Assembly (NCBI RefSeq): GCF_040938485.1
Contig: NW_027271282.1
Span: forward strand, 310,001-374,000
Source of the DNA: Diadema antillarum
Taxonomy: Eukaryota
DNA: 64,000 bases
Direction: 5' to 3'
Shown here: piece after piece, positions 4,856 to 49,078 of the stretch
How the letters are laid out: each line of letters begins with the position of its first letter
Position numbering within the stretch: position 1 is the stretch's first letter
Notes under the pieces: generated by a model
Told to the model about the DNA's origin: nothing
What the model saw: only the letters and a program-made list of their open reading frames with translations
The model's database searches: none
Position numbers and translations under genes: made by a program

Positions 4856-5421
4856 TTTATGGCAAATACGAAATCAAAATTGTTTATGAAAAATCATGAA
4901 ACTCTCCCTGAATTATTTTTCATTTAATCATCATGACAAAATGAAAAATATGACAAATTAAAAATTTAAAAATCAACATTGATTGGAAATCAATTTTACC
5001 ATTTAAATACTAGTCATGCTAGTAGGCCTACATCACGAATCCATCGAATAGAAAGCTATCGGATCAAGTCAAACTGTAAATCCAAAAAACAACAACTGGA
5101 CAACGGATCATGACGTAAAAAAATTATTATAATTATTCAGTAGTCTATAACAAATTGTCAAGCACAAATTCGATGCGGAAATATACAAACTCTATAGAAT
5201 TGGTAGAAATGCCTGTCGATTCATGACCCGCAATCGTTCTTAAAATTCTGCAAGATTTATTTTCTTAAATATAATCGTCTCTTTCTCTGTTTACTTCTTC
5301 ATCAGCGTTTTATTGTTATGCGTTACCATTTTAGGTCCTTAATGCTGTTGTTGATGTATTATCATTATCATTATCATAATCATTTTTTATATATACAGTA
5401 ATATACAAGTAGGAGTAGTTC

Positions 5422-9531: not shown

Positions 9532-12500
9532 TTACAACACGCGTGAGTCCAGCATTAACTTTAGGGTATTCAACGTCACAAGTTTCCGTGGTACTTTGTA
9601 CTGGTTAGCTGTAGCCGTGCTATTAGCTAGAATGTAGTCTTGCAAGCGACCGAATGTCCCGGGTTTGACGACATGAACGCGGGGTGGCGCTATGACATCT
9701 CTGTCGCGAAACGTGTGGTAGGGGAAAGAGAGGGCTCGAAGCTGTTCGTCAATCTGGAAAATAATCATAAATGATACGAAAACAACAACAACAGTTTAAA
9801 CATACAGCTTTACGAGATATTGATTAGGTCATGCCTTTAACCATTCCACAGTTAAGTTTGTTATACATGTACTGGCACACATTGACTGGAGTAGGCATCC
9901 GTTGTATGACGGAGAAGACAACACGAGTATAATTATAATTATGAACAGCGACACAGACACCAAGAATCACACAACGATGGCAAAATCAAAGGCGTTGACA
10001 CATACGCTGTATCCGAGCATGCTAAACATCCCATAAATATAGAAATCAACGGGGCATGATTATAATACGGGAGCGTCAAACGTGACATATAAATATTAAG
10101 AGGGAGTTTTACTTCTTTCTATTGTTAAAAAAAAAATGGTGGTAGATGTCGTTTCACTCTGACACACACCCAAAACATACACAAAGAACAAAATCTCTGC
10201 ATTGAATTTCAGTCTAACAGGTAATTTAGAAAGTGAATAATTACAACTATCCTTGAAAAAAAAATATGGAAATGTGCTGGTTGGCAACATAGCTCGGAGG
10301 TACATTTTAGAGTATGCGGCTCTTTATAGGACAAGAAGAAGAAAGTACACACCTTCATGAAATCCTCCTCGGCCAGGCAGCCGGGTTCGGGAAGTTGGTC
10401 TAGCTCCAGGAAGATCACGTAGAATGGACGATGCTCAACATGGATTGATTGGTCTTCTGGCTCATCTAACGGAGAACGAGATAATGACGAACGATTTTAG
10501 GTCTTCTGCTTGTTGCAAAACTTTTTGTGCATAGATTATCCTCAAAAGACCTCATGGCACTGTTTTATATTTCACATTCTACACAAAAGGATTTTTATTT
10601 CAGGTGTTTTATCTGGACAGTTTTGTCTCGAGTGTTTTGTCCCATCGAGCTTAAAGTGTATTTGACTCGTTGTCTTGGTAACGATTGTGACTGGGAACAT
10701 GACTTGTCTGAAAGGACACAATAAAACCAAAAAGGAAAAAAAATCCTCTGTAATTTTGCAACCACTAAAAGTGACATTACCATATATCATGACAACAAGT
10801 AGACAGGGAAGTAATAGGAGAGAGAGAGACAGCCCTCAGACAGGCAAACAGATTAACACAGTATAAACCAATATTCTTATAATCCGACGTTATGTTTAGG
10901 CCTACTATCTGAACATTCTACACTTTTTTCTGTGACGAGACAGCAACTGCCTATTCTGTCAAAAATGTACAATCCTTTCATTGAGAACCCGAGGCAATTT
11001 ACCAGCATCTGTTGTCATGGAGGAATACGCTTTAATTAAAGGGATATAATCTGTATGTATAAGTGAACCAGACTATTCGAAGTCCTACCTAACTGCTGCA
11101 GCAGTGAGCTCTCCGCGACGGCGTACTCCACGAGCTGGAACCCCGACCAAGATTTCAGTGCGCCCTCTATTGACTGTTGTACCGTAGCTTGGTCCAACTT
11201 TTCACTACTAACGTTTAGCATCTGTCCAGACCTGTTTCCATGGTAACGATCACAGATAAAATCATATTCTTCAAAAGAATTTACAAATATTGAAATGTTG
11301 AGTTTTTTTGGTACACTCCGACACAAATCATACTTTATCTTGCGCTAATTTAATGCATAATGAAAATGACAATGGAAATTTTTAACACAGTTTTAGAGCA
11401 AATTTCTTTATGCTTTGCAATATTACACTAGTGTAAGATTATGACGATTGAAATTAAAGTATTTTGCTTGTGTTTGATGATTATGAAAAACATCGACATG
11501 TTGTATTTTGTAACAATTAAGACAATTTCTTTGGGGTTACAGTAGGGCGCTTTAGATTTTCGTGACGCGGACGTTCAGAGGGAGAAAAACTTTTCTGAGC
11601 ATGAGCAAAATTGCTTATCAAAATCGATCTCGAGTAGTCTGAATTTTCACTACGCGTTTTGAGCCATTTTGGGGTCCGCTCAATTCAGAGAGCTACTTGA
11701 TGCACCGATCATAACGGGGACTCCATTATTATTTTTACTTTAAACAGGTTGCGTCTCTGCTAATTCTGTACGGTTACTTTGCAACATGACGCAGGGAGAG
11801 AGGAGAATGACCAACGCAATGAGAGTTTACTAAAAATTATAAGCTCTGCTTTTTAGCAGTTCCCTCCATTTTCAGCCATTTTTTTCTGTACTTGTCTTAA
11901 GATCACAAAATTGTATTATTGTTCATAGTTTTTTTTTCATTGCTTTGTCGTATCATTAGTATATGTGTCTTTATTAAAATGTTGTAATCATGATGTGTTG
12001 GAAATGAAATATAACGAAACGAAACAATCACGTCCGCGTCGCAAATCTGAAGCTCCATAATAACACATTTGGGGAGAGTGGTGACTTAGCAAATGTAGAG
12101 GCAATGAACATTTTAGAGAAGGATTTCTCTGTCATGACGTTCAATTCACATCTCTTTAATCATTGTCGTACCTGTACATAAACTCGACCACAGGAGTGTT
12201 ATGATGAAATCGAGTCACACGCACGACGTCCCCGTATCTGAAGCGATAGATGCCAAAGATCTGAGTGACCACTACTTCGTAGGTGCCTCCTACTCGCAAT
12301 TCGTCGATAAAGTACGTTTCTGGTTCATCCTCATGCCTAATGAAATGATGTCATATCCGAAATGGGTTTGTTAACGATCACATATCCTTAGATAATGAAA
12401 ATGACCTTTAAAATGAAATCTGACATTCCAGTCGTTAAAAAAAGAAGAAAACAAAATGAAAAACAAACAAACGTGCACTTTTCTATATAGACTTCAAAGA

Positions 12501-25769: not shown

Positions 25770-26013
25770 AAAATTCTCACTTTTGATCCTTGATAGTTAA
25801 AAAAATTATTTATCTGATAACACTGACATTGATATGAGCAATAGCTGAGTAGTGTACAATCTTGTTGGAGGTAGTTTGAAAATGATAGCATAAATCAGTT
25901 TCATTAAATAGTCGAGACTCCTGAAGGTGGAGGCCACCGAAAATGCGAGCCTAATAAACTAATTCTTTATTGGCAATATAATGCATTAATAGTTCTTGAT
26001 TCTTCGTTATATA

Positions 26014-26050
<37 letters not shown>

Positions 26051-26051
<1 letters not shown>

Positions 26052-26281
26052 ACGAAGAATAAACCGGTAATGCAATATTTCGCCAATATAGAGTTTATTG
26101 AGCAACTCAAATTTTCGGTGGCTTCCATCCACCTTCTTCAGGAGTCTCGACGCGGAATGAGACTCCTGAAGAAGGTGAATGGAAGCCACCGAAAATTTGA
26201 GTTGCTCAATAAACTCTATATTGGCGAAATATTGCATTACCGGTTTATTCTTCGTTAAATTGGAGCCAATACGTGAATTCG

Positions 26282-26286
<5 letters not shown>
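26051..26286. mobile_element. Near-perfect palindrome (~98-bp arms, 10-bp loop) plus a 30-bp tail, embedded in (TA)n
   Basis: aacgaagaataaaccggtaatgc...caggagtctc|gacgcggaat|gagactcctg...gcattaccggtttattcttcgtt; one mismatch seen. Confidence 0.85.
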
Positions 26287-26360
<74 letters not shown>

Positions 26361-27274
26361 TCGGCACGCCGTACACCGGGGTACCGTTGTAACCCGGGGT
26401 ACCGCGTTGTACAGCGCCATCTCATGCCCATTATTTTATAATGCGTATCCGAATTCAGATACGCCGATTCCGAATTCGGATACGGCAAAGTCGTAGCAAT
26501 GAACTAGCACCATAGGTGTTTTTCGAAGTACACTTGCATGCATTAATTGTTGCATAATCACAAATAAGAAAACATTTTTGTGCATAATAATACTAAAACA
26601 TATTTTGACACATTTTTTGGTAAGCCAGGGTACAGCGCTGAAAAAAAAAATTAATTCAACATAATATATAAATAATTAATTCAACAAAATGGCGAATTTT
26701 CATTTAGTACCCCAGGGTACCAAATATTGCATCATATATGTAACGACAACAATGATGAGCCGGGACTCGCTATGTTGGTTACGATGTTCTTTTTAATTCG
26801 CAGGTTCTGATCGTCAAAACCGAACCCCCTGCCAGAGACGAAGATAGCTGACTCCCGATCACTCGCTCTGCTTCACAATATCTTGATGCTTCCTCGTTGT
26901 CCAAGATTCCAATATGAAGTGAGGAGAGGAAAACTTCTCTATTTATTGGGTTTAGGACCCTTCCCAAAGATATATTTTAACTTTAAATTCCAATCCACCG
27001 ACGCACAGTTCTACGTCACTGTTACTGCCACTTTGTTTGGGTGGAGGGCTATATCTGATGGCTATGAGGTCTAGCTTGACCCAAGGAGGGCAGAGAGTGG
27101 ACATTATGCCCAAATTTGGCAAGTAAAAGTGGAGAATGTGAGCGGAAAGATTGGACTTCCTGAATGACGCAGGGTGACTCATTTGTCAAAAAAATGTATA
27201 TTTACGTTACTTTTGTTTTAATGTTGATTCTCAAAAATCTTTCTTTCTCTTTGTTTTGGCAAAATCCACAATGT

Positions 27275-27319
<45 letters not shown>

Positions 27320-28862
27320 GTGTTACAAAAAAAAACATTTTTCACTTTTGATCCTTGATAGTTAAAAAACTATTATTATATCTGATAACACTGACATTGA
27401 CATGAGCAATAGCTGAATAGTGTACAACTTTGTTGGAGGCAATTTGAAAATGATAGCATAGGCCTAAATCAGTTTCATTAACATGATTAAATTCAAGATC
27501 TATTTTTCAGTTAGATTTCAGATTTTGCTCTGTTTTCAACCCTCTGAACAAAATTTTAGTTTTGCACAGGGATCAATAATTGGTGTGTATGCCAGTATGT
27601 GGTTAACACCCTGACAATGGTCCTGAACAAATGGCCAGGATTGGAATGCTCTATTACATGTCAATGAGAAATCCCACTACCTCAGCTTTAGTCTTTATTC
27701 ATCCTGAAATGTAGTGTATGCAAGCATATGGAAACATATGCGTATTTTTTCATACTCATTCATTTTACCCTTTACCATGAATTCAGACTAGCGGTGCCTG
27801 CATGGGGCAATCCATCATGAATGATTAATAAAGCATTCATTGTATGCCTTGGAGCAAGAGTCCAGCTAGCAGAGCTCTTAAAAAGGTGGTATATTTTGTG
27901 GTATTCACGTCTATTGTCCAGGGTCATTGTAAGCACACACTCACATACACATCATTGAATCTTGTGTAAAGTTCAAGTTTGTACTGATGGTTGAAATTTA
28001 ACTAAAAATCTGAAACTTAACTTTAAAAGTAATCATGGATTTAACGTAACTGATTCATGCTCTCATACTCAAATCGCCTCCAACTAAATAGTACACTATC
28101 TTTAAACTATTACTCATGTCGATGACAATGTTATCCGATACACAGTTTTCGAATTATCAAAAGTGGAAAATGTTTTTACCTAGATTTATGGTTCAACATC
28201 AAAACAGCATGGCTTTGATGCAAGACTCTCCAGAACAGTTATGACAGCCTTAACGTTCCTCAGAGTGCTACCATCTGTTGAGCATTTAAAATGTATTAAC
28301 TGTTTAGGTAGACATTGTTGATCGTATATCTGGTCTGCAGTCACATTCTTATACCTCAAGGTTTTCACTGTGGAAGTCTGATCGGTCCATTCTGTTTGCA
28401 TACACAATGCTCTTAATCATAATAATCGTGACATCCAACGATGCAATAGACCGCTCTATCTATACTTGCACACTCTGGTGACGCAAACATTTACGTGATA
28501 TCTTTCACTTTCAGGTAGTTTCAATTATGATGTTTAACCTATAAATGAATGATACTAGATGGTATCATAAACGTAGTATCTTCTAGAAATCTTAATGTTT
28601 CTATGATAGTACTATAGAGCAAAATAGTGTCATCGTCTTGTTACGCAATATTGTTAAGCTTATTTTTACAATTCCGTGATTGATGAATGACTGTTATGTT
28701 TTACTGCATGTCTCATGCTCAGTTATGAAGTATACAGAAAATTAATAAAGATACTGTCTTATGTTTCATCTTACTATCTACTTCATGACTGAAATTTCTT
28801 TCTAATTTTTCTCCATTGCAAGACGCTTACAGCTTAGAAACGTTGTAATAAGCGCTTTATAA

Positions 28863-30373: not shown

Positions 30374-42708
<12,335 letters not shown>

Positions 42709-45964: not shown

Positions 45965-46700
45965 CGAAACTGTAACTCAATCCTCACATCTTGCAGAAAA
46001 ACCCTGTTTGATTTGATTTGATTCAGTGGGCATGGAAAAATAGGGATCTTTGTGAAACATGTCAGAAATCCCTTCCCTCCAAAGTTTGCAAGGAGACATG
46101 CTGCCCATTATGTTCACACCATACAAAGTTGTTCATTGTGTTTGTGCATAGATATATATATCTTGAAAAAGTCACTGCTTGTTGCTTTTCATTTCAAACT
46201 ACTCGGTATTCAAATGAAATGAATAATCATCATCAAGAAGGAAGCACATTTCTGAGTTTTACAAATGTTGGTAAGATGTGAAAATGAATGATTAATGAAA
46301 GGTATTTATGATCATCTCATGGAAGACTGGAAGAAGCTCTTCCTCCGATAGCTTTTTGTTTTCTGCGTCAGTTGTCTTTTTCCTCTACAGTGTATTTTTT
46401 TTTGTGGTCAAGATGATCATAAGCAACAATATTTACATATTGTACCTATTTGTATACAGTTGTGTACTTACAATATTGATATGTTATGCACATAATTTGA
46501 ATTTATTTGTTAATTGCTACATGTTCAATTCATGTCAGTTGTGAGCAAAATATTTTCATTCAAATGGATGTCACTACCATCCAAGAGCCAAACTTAGAAG
46601 AAACGGACCCATTGCATGCCTTACGAAGATCCACATTTTGCCCTGTGACAACTGAACCAAATTAAGTGGGATTTTCTGCAAGATGTAGTTAACAAACTAC
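45965..46700. repeat. Longer relative of the 8424-8703 repeat
   Basis: Both ends align with the two halves of the 8.4-8.7 kb copy. Confidence 0.5.
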
Positions 46701-46896
46701 AGTTTTATACCCTGAATAAACATTTAGGTTTATTTGATTATTTTGAGAGTTATTAATGAGGAAAGTCTGAAAGTAAGTTTTGGTGGGACATACTGTATTA
46801 AACTACTCTGCACCTCAATCTCCGGTATAAAATTTATTGATTCACTCTTGTAAAGGCCAACACTGCAGGAACACTTGAAAGGGTTAGCAGATTGGA

Positions 46897-48170
46897 TATT
46901 ATGCAAATAATAATGTTCATGAATGCAATGTACAGAATATTTCACGAGGTGAAAGATGAAAGTATCCATTCAATGAGACGCAGCCGAGTTGAATGGATTG
47001 AACATTTCATCTTTTACCGAATAAATACTCTGTCCATTGCAGAAATCAAAAACATTTATTATTTGTTTTATATAACGCCTACAATGATCATTGTCATTTG
47101 ATGTTCTATTAATTTGGAAATAAGAGAGAATCTGAGATCATGAGTGCTCATGCATACACAAGTGCTTTACATGCGTAATGTGACGGGCTCTCAGCCAGTG
47201 TGCAATGGAGCAAATGGTATAGACCCAAAGTGACCTCTGTCAAACGACAAATCAAATGACAAGGATCTCTTCAGGCGTTATATAATACTGGATACTACAT
47301 GTACTTACGGAAGTACAAAATGTATGTGTCGCTTAGTTGAACTGTACATTCAGGATACACACCTTTTAAAATAGTGATAGTCAGCAATTCCACTGCAAGC
47401 AGTAACTTCATCCAGTAATTGTTTCTTGACGTACTGGGACATTGCTTTCATAAACTGTATTCCAGTGTTTCATGTGTTGTACATGTACACACATCAGTGC
47501 ACACTGCTTTAATACCCTACATGTGCATGTTATTCTTGACATGATGTTTCAAAGTAGGCAGCTGAATACATGCTTCAACTGATATGAAATGTTAAATGGA
47601 AGTCTATTATGATTGACACATAATTTTGAGCATGATGGCAGAATAATCTACAGCAGTATAAACTTTGATTTATATTTATATAACGCCTGAAGAGATCCTT
47701 GTAATTTGATTGGTTGTTTGACATTGATTATTCGGCCCATTTCACTATGACGTCATTATCCGTGCAATTGTGGTTCCATTTACCTTGCAATTTTGGATCT
47801 ATACGATTTGCTCCATTGCACGCTCACTGAGAGCCCGGCATACTACGCGTATACGCTTGTGTTTTGCAGTGTACAGTATGCAACAGCGGGCTACCTAGCG
47901 TAAAGCGCTAAGTGAACACTCTCGCGATCTCAGATTCTCTGTTGTTTCTAAATAAATAAAACATGAAAGGACAAGGATCTCTTTCAGGCGTTATATAAAA
48001 CAAATAATAAATGTTTTTCATTCGTGCAATGGACAGAATATTTCATTCTGTGAAAGATGAAATGTTTGATCCATTCAACGAGGCTGCGCCTCGTTGAATG
48101 GATCATTTCATCTTTCACCTCATGAAATATTCTGTCCATTGCACTAATAAACATTCATTATTTGTATAAT
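46897..48170. mobile_element. Two inverted copies (46897-47287 and 47672-48170) of one palindrome-containing element
   Basis: Shared gagaatctgagatc, gggctctcag, gtgcaatggagcaaat and acaaggatctcttcaggcgttatataa in opposite orientation; central palindrome atccattcaacgaggc-tgc-gcctcgttgaatggat at ~48069-48103. Confidence 0.75.
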
Positions 48171-49078
48171 AACATATGAGCTAAATACTAATAAAGTGAT
48201 ACCTCATTCAATGCAACATTATGTTTTGACTAATCACAGGAATTGTAGATGCATGGAAAATAAGAATTCAAAGCAAAGTAACTTCATTCCAATGGATAAG
48301 TTTAATGGAATACAGTATTTTACAATCTCTATTTACATCAAACAGTACATTCATAGAAACACTAATTGCTAAATATGAGTTTCCCATGTATATGAATGGA
48401 ATTCAGTTGTTTCAATTAAAGGAAACAACATAATAATTATGTTAACATTTCATCTCAAGCACAGATAATATTCGTGTTTTTGATATTTGCTTGTTTTATT
48501 TTGTTTCGACAAATTTGAAAAATAGGCAATGTGAAAAAAGAAGACATAGATATCGCAAAACTGAATGAATTTAGTGAATACATCTAGTGCCAAGATGGGT
48601 TGGTCTCATTTACATTTTTATATGCTAGCATTTTTCCCCAAGGGAATCTGCCACTTAATAGTAATCAGGTATACATGTAATTGTGTGACCATGTTCAGTA
48701 AGTTTCATGCTATTTTCTCTCCATTTACACCTGAAAATGAAATATGATCACACAAGAGCAGAGTATACATAATTATGCTCCCTACGTGATACATGTACAT
48801 AAATGCACATGTCCAAATGGTCCACATGTGCAAAAAGGAATTTGACTTTTCCGCCCAGAAACAGCTTCTTCAGTTAGTGTGCAATGCATCTCTGTAGTCT
48901 TGATGCATTGCAGTGTTCCACCACAGGAAGTTACTGGTAAGCCCACATCTTATACAACAGCTCCAACATGTGCACACATAAAACACAGCCACCCGATATG
49001 GCTTCATCAACAGCGTGCCCCTGGCAAACAGTGTTTATAGAGTTATTGTCATATGAGTCAGTGTGCAGGAAGACCTTT

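Follow-up and report, generated by a model that had tools for sequence, protein, structure and literature searches.

Palindromic octamers at TA dinucleotides

The 64,000-nucleotide stretch of the genome of the sea urchin Diadema antillarum analysed here (contig NW_027271282.1, positions 310,001 to 374,000 of the forward strand; hereafter the window) contains many copies of two palindromic octamers, TAGGCCTA (TA+GG+CC+TA) and TACATGTA (TA+CA+TG+TA). Our results suggest that these octamers are very probably the scars left at donor sites by cut-and-paste DNA transposons with TA as their insertion target. The original prediction had put TAGGCCTA at 15 or more copies and TACATGTA at about 25, with rough expectations of less than one and about two. 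TAGGCCTA occurs exactly 15 times, at every position then listed, and TACATGTA occurs 27 times, while dinucleotide shuffles give expectations of 0.45 and 2.03; 0 of 100 shuffles reached 15 for the former or 27 for the latter. An order-3 Markov model gives similarly low expectations for the window (0.48 and 3.65). With simple repeats excluded, no other palindromic octamer in the window, and no other octamer of the form TA-NNNN-TA, is as over-represented as these two words. The 42 flanking contexts show no relation to one another, and the octamer count is therefore not that of a single repeat counted repeatedly. Four copies of TAGGCCTA fall within 1.55 kb; this clustering was not significant (p=0.054).

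A genome-wide octamer count had been proposed as a check, and word counts taken over the whole 1.75-Gb assembly bear out the enrichment of TAGGCCTA over both of its control words.

TAGGCCTA: 128,068 copies genome-wide
ATCCGGAT, the backward reading of TAGGCCTA: 11,461 copies
ATGGCCAT, with the flanks of TAGGCCTA swapped and the core kept, no CpG: 25,268 copies
TACATGTA: 304,942 copies genome-wide
ATGTACAT, the backward reading of TACATGTA: 154,757 copies

The excess of TAGGCCTA over the ATGGCCAT background amounts to roughly 100,000 copies genome-wide. Octamer density in the window is higher than the genome average, by about 3-fold for TAGGCCTA and 2.4-fold for TACATGTA.

Polarity and polymorphism of the octamers

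As the original prediction had described, a segment of about 135 bp is present twice in the window, and the second copy carries a TA duplication plus GGCC: the sequence reads gatagca-TA-aatcag at 25891 and gatagca-TAGGCCTA-aatcag at 27459. The segment is no private duplication. It has more than 1,600 candidate matching places in the genome and is part of the inverted-repeat arm, about 190 bp long, of a family of miniature inverted-repeat transposable elements (MITEs) of about 850 bp, the ends of which read CTAGGTGTTAC directly after TA.

25770..25905, + strand: MITE arm copy 1, starting at an N run
25891..25892: plain, unscarred TA in arm copy 1, the ancestral state of the family
27335..27520, + strand: MITE arm copy 2, 89% identical to copy 1 and 80-83% identical to other copies

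A search of the genome with the 10 and 12 bases that flank the critical TA, with a spacing of 0-14 letters permitted, recovered 93 copies of this site. About 80 of the 93 read TA, and a few carry substitutions (TG, TC, AA, CA). The sole length variants were TAGGCCTA (the copy in the window), TACATGTA (one copy, on contig C127), TGTA (two copies, on C59) and TAAATTTTA (two copies); a further arm copy, with a mismatch in its flank, reads TACTGTA. The state in about 80 of the 93 paralogous copies makes TA ancestral and the octamer derived, by an insertion of 6 bp. This polarity excludes a deletion in copy 1, which had been named as one outcome that would overturn the footprint reading. It also changes the description of the two copies, which had been called an empty/filled pair and are actually an unscarred and a scarred site. 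The comparison shows what appears to be scarring of the same TA, in different copies, by both end types. The MITE of about 850 bp was itself considered as the GGCC donor and rejected: its ends read CTAGG after TA, and it is a target instead.

A second line of evidence comes from contig C66, in which the region at about 780.4-846.2 kb (780436-846157) runs colinear with the entire window in blocks of 95-99% identity. The chained alignment of the two covers 54,535 columns, with 1.8% substitutions and 299 indels. Many other retrieved loci are also present as near-identical pairs on different contigs, and these pairs, together with the 1.75-Gb size, suggest that the assembly holds both haplotypes uncollapsed. 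Were C66 a very recent segmental duplication instead, the argument from polymorphism would hold equally. Comparison of haplotypes at single TA sites had been suggested as a check, and five clean 6-bp indels between TA and octamer were found, four involving TACATGTA and one TAGGCCTA. These are the first five entries below, followed by two related indels.

32809..32816: TACATGTA in the window, TA in C66
44810..44817: TACATGTA in the window, TA in C66
44883..44884: TA in the window, TACATGTA in C66 (C66:826285)
48186..48187: TA in the window, TACATGTA in C66 (C66:830510)
21273..21274: TA in the window, TAGGCCTA in C66 (C66:801711), 52 bp past the stop of an open reading frame (ORF) for a rhodopsin-type G-protein-coupled receptor (GPCR)
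18921..18922: TA in the window, TACAGTA in C66, a scar of the 3-nt type
42185..42191: 7-bp insertion in the window giving TACCAGGTA (CCA..TGG, a mariner-like scar), TA in C66

The octamers thus arise as 6-bp insertions at an existing TA, and they are still polymorphic. Other TA-bounded indels between the window and C66 comprise TACAGTA, TACCGTA, TATAGTA, TATGTA, TACCAGGTA and TACATTTGTA. Among indels of 3-9 bp, 16 of 118 take the form TA-X-TA, the core containing more than just A and T; a null of random insertion predicts 1.7%. The same form accounts for 7 of the 18 six-bp indels (39%), and among all indels that separate the two sequences the scar form makes up about 5%. When the remaining near-identical locus pairs were compared pair by pair, nothing further emerged.

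Most of the octamers in the window are shared with C66; for TAGGCCTA this holds at 13 of 14 alignable sites.

5023..5030: TAGGCCTA, same in C66
5705..5712: TAGGCCTA, same in C66
6108..6115: TAGGCCTA, same in C66, with 5 additional adjoining bases (ATATA) in C66
6574..6581: TAGGCCTA, same in C66, with an additional adjoining TA in C66
10897..10904: TAGGCCTA, same in C66
15252..15259: TAGGCCTA, same in C66
27459..27466: TAGGCCTA in MITE arm copy 2, with a 118-bp deletion in C66
32634..32641: TAGGCCTA, same in C66
40939..40946: TAGGCCTA, same in C66
50878..50885: TAGGCCTA, same in C66, with an adjoining 4-bp indel (CGTT)
51028..51035: TAGGCCTA, same in C66
51712..51719: TAGGCCTA, same in C66
55801..55808: TAGGCCTA inside a 1.48-kb element, inherited with its family
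58859..58866: TAGGCCTA, same in C66
61126..61133: TAGGCCTA, same in C66
4633 (..4640), 6835, 9864, 23561, 32562, 33630, 34897, 42572, 47296, 49601, 49851, 50749, 53791, 54402, 58025, 62539: TACATGTA, unchanged in C66 (16 sites)
966, 1073, 25126, 40042: TACATGTA, not aligned to C66
4434, 47480, 50734: TACATGTA with an indel relative to C66 (10-bp, 4-bp and 2-bp, respectively)
48672, 48790: TACATGTA in the window, TACGTGTA in C66

Short indels adjoin three of the shared TAGGCCTA sites (6108, 6574 and 50878) and could stem from imprecise repair or from repeated use of the new TAs. Abutting scars were observed at 42572, 33630 and 49844-49858 (TACATGTACATG, TACATGTAACATGTA and TACAGTGTACATGTA), an arrangement that is expected if the TA of a scar is re-used as a target. 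At one of the two sites that read TACGTGTA in C66, the A at 48675 is kept in contigs of a sister species (organism B, about 93-94% alike; 46100-52000 compared, 5,901 letters).

The two haplotypes also differ by larger insertions. At C66:788920-789026 (window 9182/9183) an TACATGTA scar and a MITE of about 97 bp with GCCGGGTTCACAC inverted repeats lie 8 bp apart, and the window lacks both, so that two events would lie adjacent on one haplotype. A 310-bp insertion at 2470-2779, with ends CAGAGACTCC..GGAGTCTCTG and a 7-bp duplication (GGTTTTA), is absent from C66; it is a polymorphic MITE, possibly hAT-like. Runs of eight or more G or C are strongly over-represented throughout the window (55 G8 and 38 C8, with about 2 and 0.6 expected; e.g., 50757-50775) and differ in length between the window and C66. 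Host coding sequence in the window includes the intronless rhodopsin-family GPCR ORF (21328-22491, - strand), a GH3-domain exon (13533-14669, - strand) and an enkurin-domain exon (49079-49561, - strand).

Resident elements with TA-flanked ends

Elements whose ends lie directly inside a TA duplication are resident in the window, with both the GG..CC and the CA..TG kinds of end.

11543..12059: MITE copy with TA-GGG..CCC-TA boundaries, GGGAGCTTTAGATTT ends and an internal insertion of about 210 bp; TA flanks at 11543-11544 and 12058-12059
55038..56518: non-autonomous DNA transposon of 1.48 kb, young, with many subterminal repeats; reads TA-TAGG..CCTA-TA
56695..57228: MITE with TA-CACTG..CAGTG-TA ends, of the CA..TG donor type
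59208..60183: element with TA-CACTCAG..CTGAGTG-TA ends, of the CA..TG donor type
58387..58430, + strand: left end of an element that reads CAGTGCAACCCC after TA; no matching right end was recognised

The GG-ended elements were sought by a scan for TAGG..CCTA inverted repeats over about 250 kb of sequence. A strict, gap-free scan for TAGGG inverted repeats found nothing; the looser TAGG scan, followed by inspection, found a family that we refer to as GGGAGC-ended. Its 325-bp member at L014:872-1196 is bounded by inverted repeats of about 32 bp, which follow TA directly and begin with GGGAGCTTTAGATTT. This copy, the copy at 11543-12059 of the window (also present in C66) and a third at L051:2431-2757 are independent, with differing flanks and the same TA-GGG..CCC-TA boundary. 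Genome-wide there are at least 2,157 candidates at 76-81% identity, the alignments of which typically end at TA, and 2,620 exact 15-nt termini, counted with a pattern that admits three quarters of the family's termini. About 90 of the first 100 termini listed are preceded by TA, and the sequence further out is variable. The GGGAGC-ended MITE thus combines a TA target-site duplication of 2 bp with inverted repeats at its termini. The footprint reading requires a numerous family that duplicates TA and has GGG..CCC ends, the non-existence of which had been named as a possible refutation; on this evidence such a family exists. We take it, provisionally, as a candidate for the type of element that donated TAGGCCTA.

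The 1.48-kb element at 55038-56518 had been put forward as having TA-GG..CC-TA ends. The TA and GG letters are indeed there; the element reads TATAGG..CCTATA, and it is at most a putative GGCC donor. Its family has at least 1,287 candidates at 96-98% identity, and all independent copies share the TATAGG..CCTATA reading, with variable outer bases. Because of this uniformity the end is ambiguous: it may be a TA duplication followed by a TAGG terminus, which seems the more likely arrangement, or GG after a fixed TATA. Among 30 copies of the family, the indels included a single footprint-like event, TACAGTGTA in a subfamily. At least 13 occurrences of one insertion of this element have the same flanks and agree at 98-99.9% identity over 3.3 kb (L032-L047; C2179, C182, C2293, C1559, C251 and others); this insertion therefore sits inside a larger multi-copy unit. 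At L059, copies of the element are nested in a (TAA)n tract. A further TAGG..CCTA pair, at 24649-25953, was considered as a TA-GG element and rejected as a foldback, since its palindrome extends well past TAGG. Two long foldback elements of one family (24585-24790 and 26050-26250) adjoin (TA)n microsatellites there, and an internal TAGG mimics a TA-GG end.

For the CA..TG kind, elements had been proposed at 56697, 58388 and 59210. The first and third were recovered with both ends (56695-57228 and 59208-60183), while the one at 58388 has only one recognisable end. A related element that reads CAGTGGAAAC after TA (TA-CAGTGG) is present at C66:820532 and missing from the window. Families flanked by TA and bearing either kind of end are thus resident and numerous.

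Excision as the probable source of the octamers

The reading best supported is that the octamer consists of the duplicated TA together with two letters contributed by each of the two ends of a TA-targeting element that has since left. Insertion of the element would duplicate TA. On excision, the transposase would cut the transferred strand at the end of the element and the other strand 2 nt inside it, which would leave each flank with TA and a 2-nt overhang from the element. End joining without loss would then give TA+CA+TG+TA from CA..TG ends and TA+GG+CC+TA from GG(G)..(C)CC ends, and rarer 3+2 products would give TACAGTGTA and TAGGGCCTA, with shorter products also in the minority. We infer this stagger and end-joining repair, as well as membership of the CA- and GGG-ended families in the Tc1/mariner superfamily. 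That TAGGCCTA is the scar of a TA-targeting element with GG..CC ends had been the central proposal of the original prediction, and it gains support from the polarity of the insertion, from its polymorphism and from the resident donors.

The minor products are found as expected: the 3+2 forms, and TACAGTA, TATGTA, TGTA and TACTGTA as indels. Counted with their complements, TACAGTGTA occurs 11 times in the window (0.82 expected) and TAGGGCCTA four times (0.14 expected), although at least one of the 11 copies of TACAGTGTA, at 57220, is the end of a resident MITE. Read as 3+2 letters, these words point to likely CAG or CAC ends in one case and GGG or GGC ends in the other. The 7-mers TACAGTA and TACTGTA are only weakly enriched (23 in the window, 13.9 expected), and the 2+2 form is therefore the dominant product. 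A further word, TACCGGTA, is present 37,587 times genome-wide, above ATCCGGAT (11,461) and ATGGCCAT (25,268) despite its CpG; related positions in the window are 37603, 42185 and 3636, with TACCAGGTA and TACCGTA as polymorphic indels. It may represent a third scar class, derived from CC(A)..(T)GG mariner-like ends.

The proposed mechanism is a textbook one, found here at unusual density. In Tc1/mariner elements, cleavage of the non-transferred strand falls a few nucleotides within the element, and the footprint consists of 2-4 terminal nucleotides between two TAs (PMC6943129); a member of the family, ISY100, is cleaved exactly at its 3' ends and 2 nt inside its 5' ends (PMC2170065). As in Tc1/Tc3-type elements (Tc1/mariner/IS630), TA is duplicated and the scar consists of two TAs and two letters from each end, and TACATGTA has the form expected for CA..TG ends. 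Unlike those cases, the scars are read here from a wild genome, on a scale of 10^5, rather than from an excision assay, and there is a second scar type, from GG(G)-ended elements, of which we found no description in the literature searched. Sleeping Beauty, with a 3-nt stagger, leaves TACAGTA and TACTGTA (PMC6943129). One polymorphic TACAGTA (18921) and one TACTGTA in a MITE copy resemble these footprints, whereas the dominance of 8-mers argues for a 2-nt rather than a 3-nt stagger in most events; the sequences as they stand fit a 2-nt stagger. A catalogue of excisions in rice, made from Oryza sativa and O. glaberrima, likewise relied on aligned genomes and regarded excision as a source of small indels; a clean footprint was seen in 8 of 94 excisions, and most of the others had deletions or filler DNA (PMC4423477). 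In the sea urchin, by contrast, clean canonical scars are so frequent that they distort word counts across the genome. Our literature searches by motif and by topic turned up no paper that deals with these octamers or with excision scars in sea urchins, which is not proof of absence.

Several observations weigh against excision as the general explanation. Genome-wide, TACATGTA is only 2-fold above its reversed control, ATGTACAT. Neither a transposase nor an autonomous copy was connected with the GGG-ended family, of which the listed paired termini are all 150-350 bp apart. No allelic pair of an intact element and a scar, such as had been suggested as a check for TAGGCCTA, appeared in 55 kb of haplotype alignment. 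The sister-species contigs (46100-52000) gave no usable resolution at the octamers. Some copies of the octamers are inherited within repeats. Scars exceed intact-ended GGGAGC elements by roughly 30-60 to 1, with about 100,000 excess copies of TAGGCCTA and about 1,750-2,200 recognisable elements of the family. Such an excess is possible because a cut-and-paste element may leave a scar at each jump while its copy number stays the same, and it also leaves room for other donors. Finally, among all flanks in the retrieved sequence, the base before the scar TA is G at a frequency of 0.40 for TAGGCCTA and 0.33 for TACATGTA, with a background of 0.22 (a 1.5-1.8-fold enrichment, approximately), and the base outside the TA is a purine in 72-76% of cases, whereas the same position in extant GGGAGC insertions is mostly A or T. 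Further GG-ended families, or some other source, may thus have contributed.

These last two observations are also grounds for a different donor. It is unlikely, in our judgement, that the scars, though real, had their main TAGGCCTA donor outside the GGGAGC-ended MITEs, either in the TATAGG family of 1.48-kb elements or in some further TA-targeting family that ends in GG or GGC. TAGGCCCTA is equally derivable from GGC..GCC ends, and the 1.48-kb family is both abundant and young. In that family, however, GG ends inside a duplicated TATA would predict TATAGGCCTATA, with TA on both sides of the scar; there is no such site in the window, and TA is present on 4 of 30 sides, about the chance level. 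The GGGAGC family, moreover, is the only TA-GG family in the roughly 250 kb scanned in which homology stops at TA. On balance the GGGAGC-ended MITE, rather than another GG-ended family, probably made most of the TAGGCCTA scars.

There is a very small chance that the enrichment reflects octamers copied within dispersed repeats and not independent events. The TAGGCCTA at 55801 illustrates such copying: it is carried at the same position by 29 of 30 copies of the 1.48-kb family, stands in the consensus of that family, and was therefore inherited without a separate event. Part of the genome-wide count of 128,068 is inherited in the same manner. Against copying as the general cause, the window contexts are mutually unrelated for 14 of 15 copies of TAGGCCTA and 27 of 27 copies of TACATGTA, the octamer is the rare state in the MITE arm (1 of 93 copies), and the clean allelic indels lie in unique sequence. 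Similarly improbable is a process independent of any element, such as a nuclease acting at TA followed by templated palindromic fill-in, that would add 6 bp. In its favour, the filled allele was seen at no scarred site; additions of the hairpin type, however, would copy variable flanks and not a constant CA/TG or GG/CC, and the constant letters match the resident TA-flanked ends, including the third letter of the 3+2 variants. Least credible of all is that the octamers are selected protein-binding palindromes, e.g., transcription-factor sites: both are perfect palindromes and one polymorphic copy lies just past the GPCR ORF, but they originate by insertion at TA and not by substitution, are polymorphic for presence and absence, occur inside decaying transposon copies and are accompanied by graded 4-7-bp relatives (TGTA, TACAGTA, TACAGTGTA) that fit repair products rather than a motif.

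We would put at slightly under an even chance the broader proposal that the scars of excision make up a major class of this sea urchin's germ-line mutations, and one that can be counted. It is based on the roughly 10^5 copies of TAGGCCTA and more than 10^5 copies of TACATGTA above controls, on an excess of scars over surviving intact-ended donors of an order of magnitude or more, and on the segregation between haplotypes of about one clean octamer indel per 11 kb. The contrast with rice suggests unusually faithful end joining at these breaks, which would bear on the use of Tc1/mariner vectors in echinoderms. If the proposal is correct, a census of such words would provide a per-family record of cleavage stagger, target choice and past activity, nearly vanished families included, and scar counts per end type could be used to estimate the lifetime activity of a family and the cleavage geometry of its transposase without biochemistry. 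Scars near or inside genes, such as the one beyond the GPCR stop, would form a ready class of natural variants. On the excision reading, cut-and-paste transposition in this organism leaves a legible, datable record and supplies a visible share of small-indel polymorphism.

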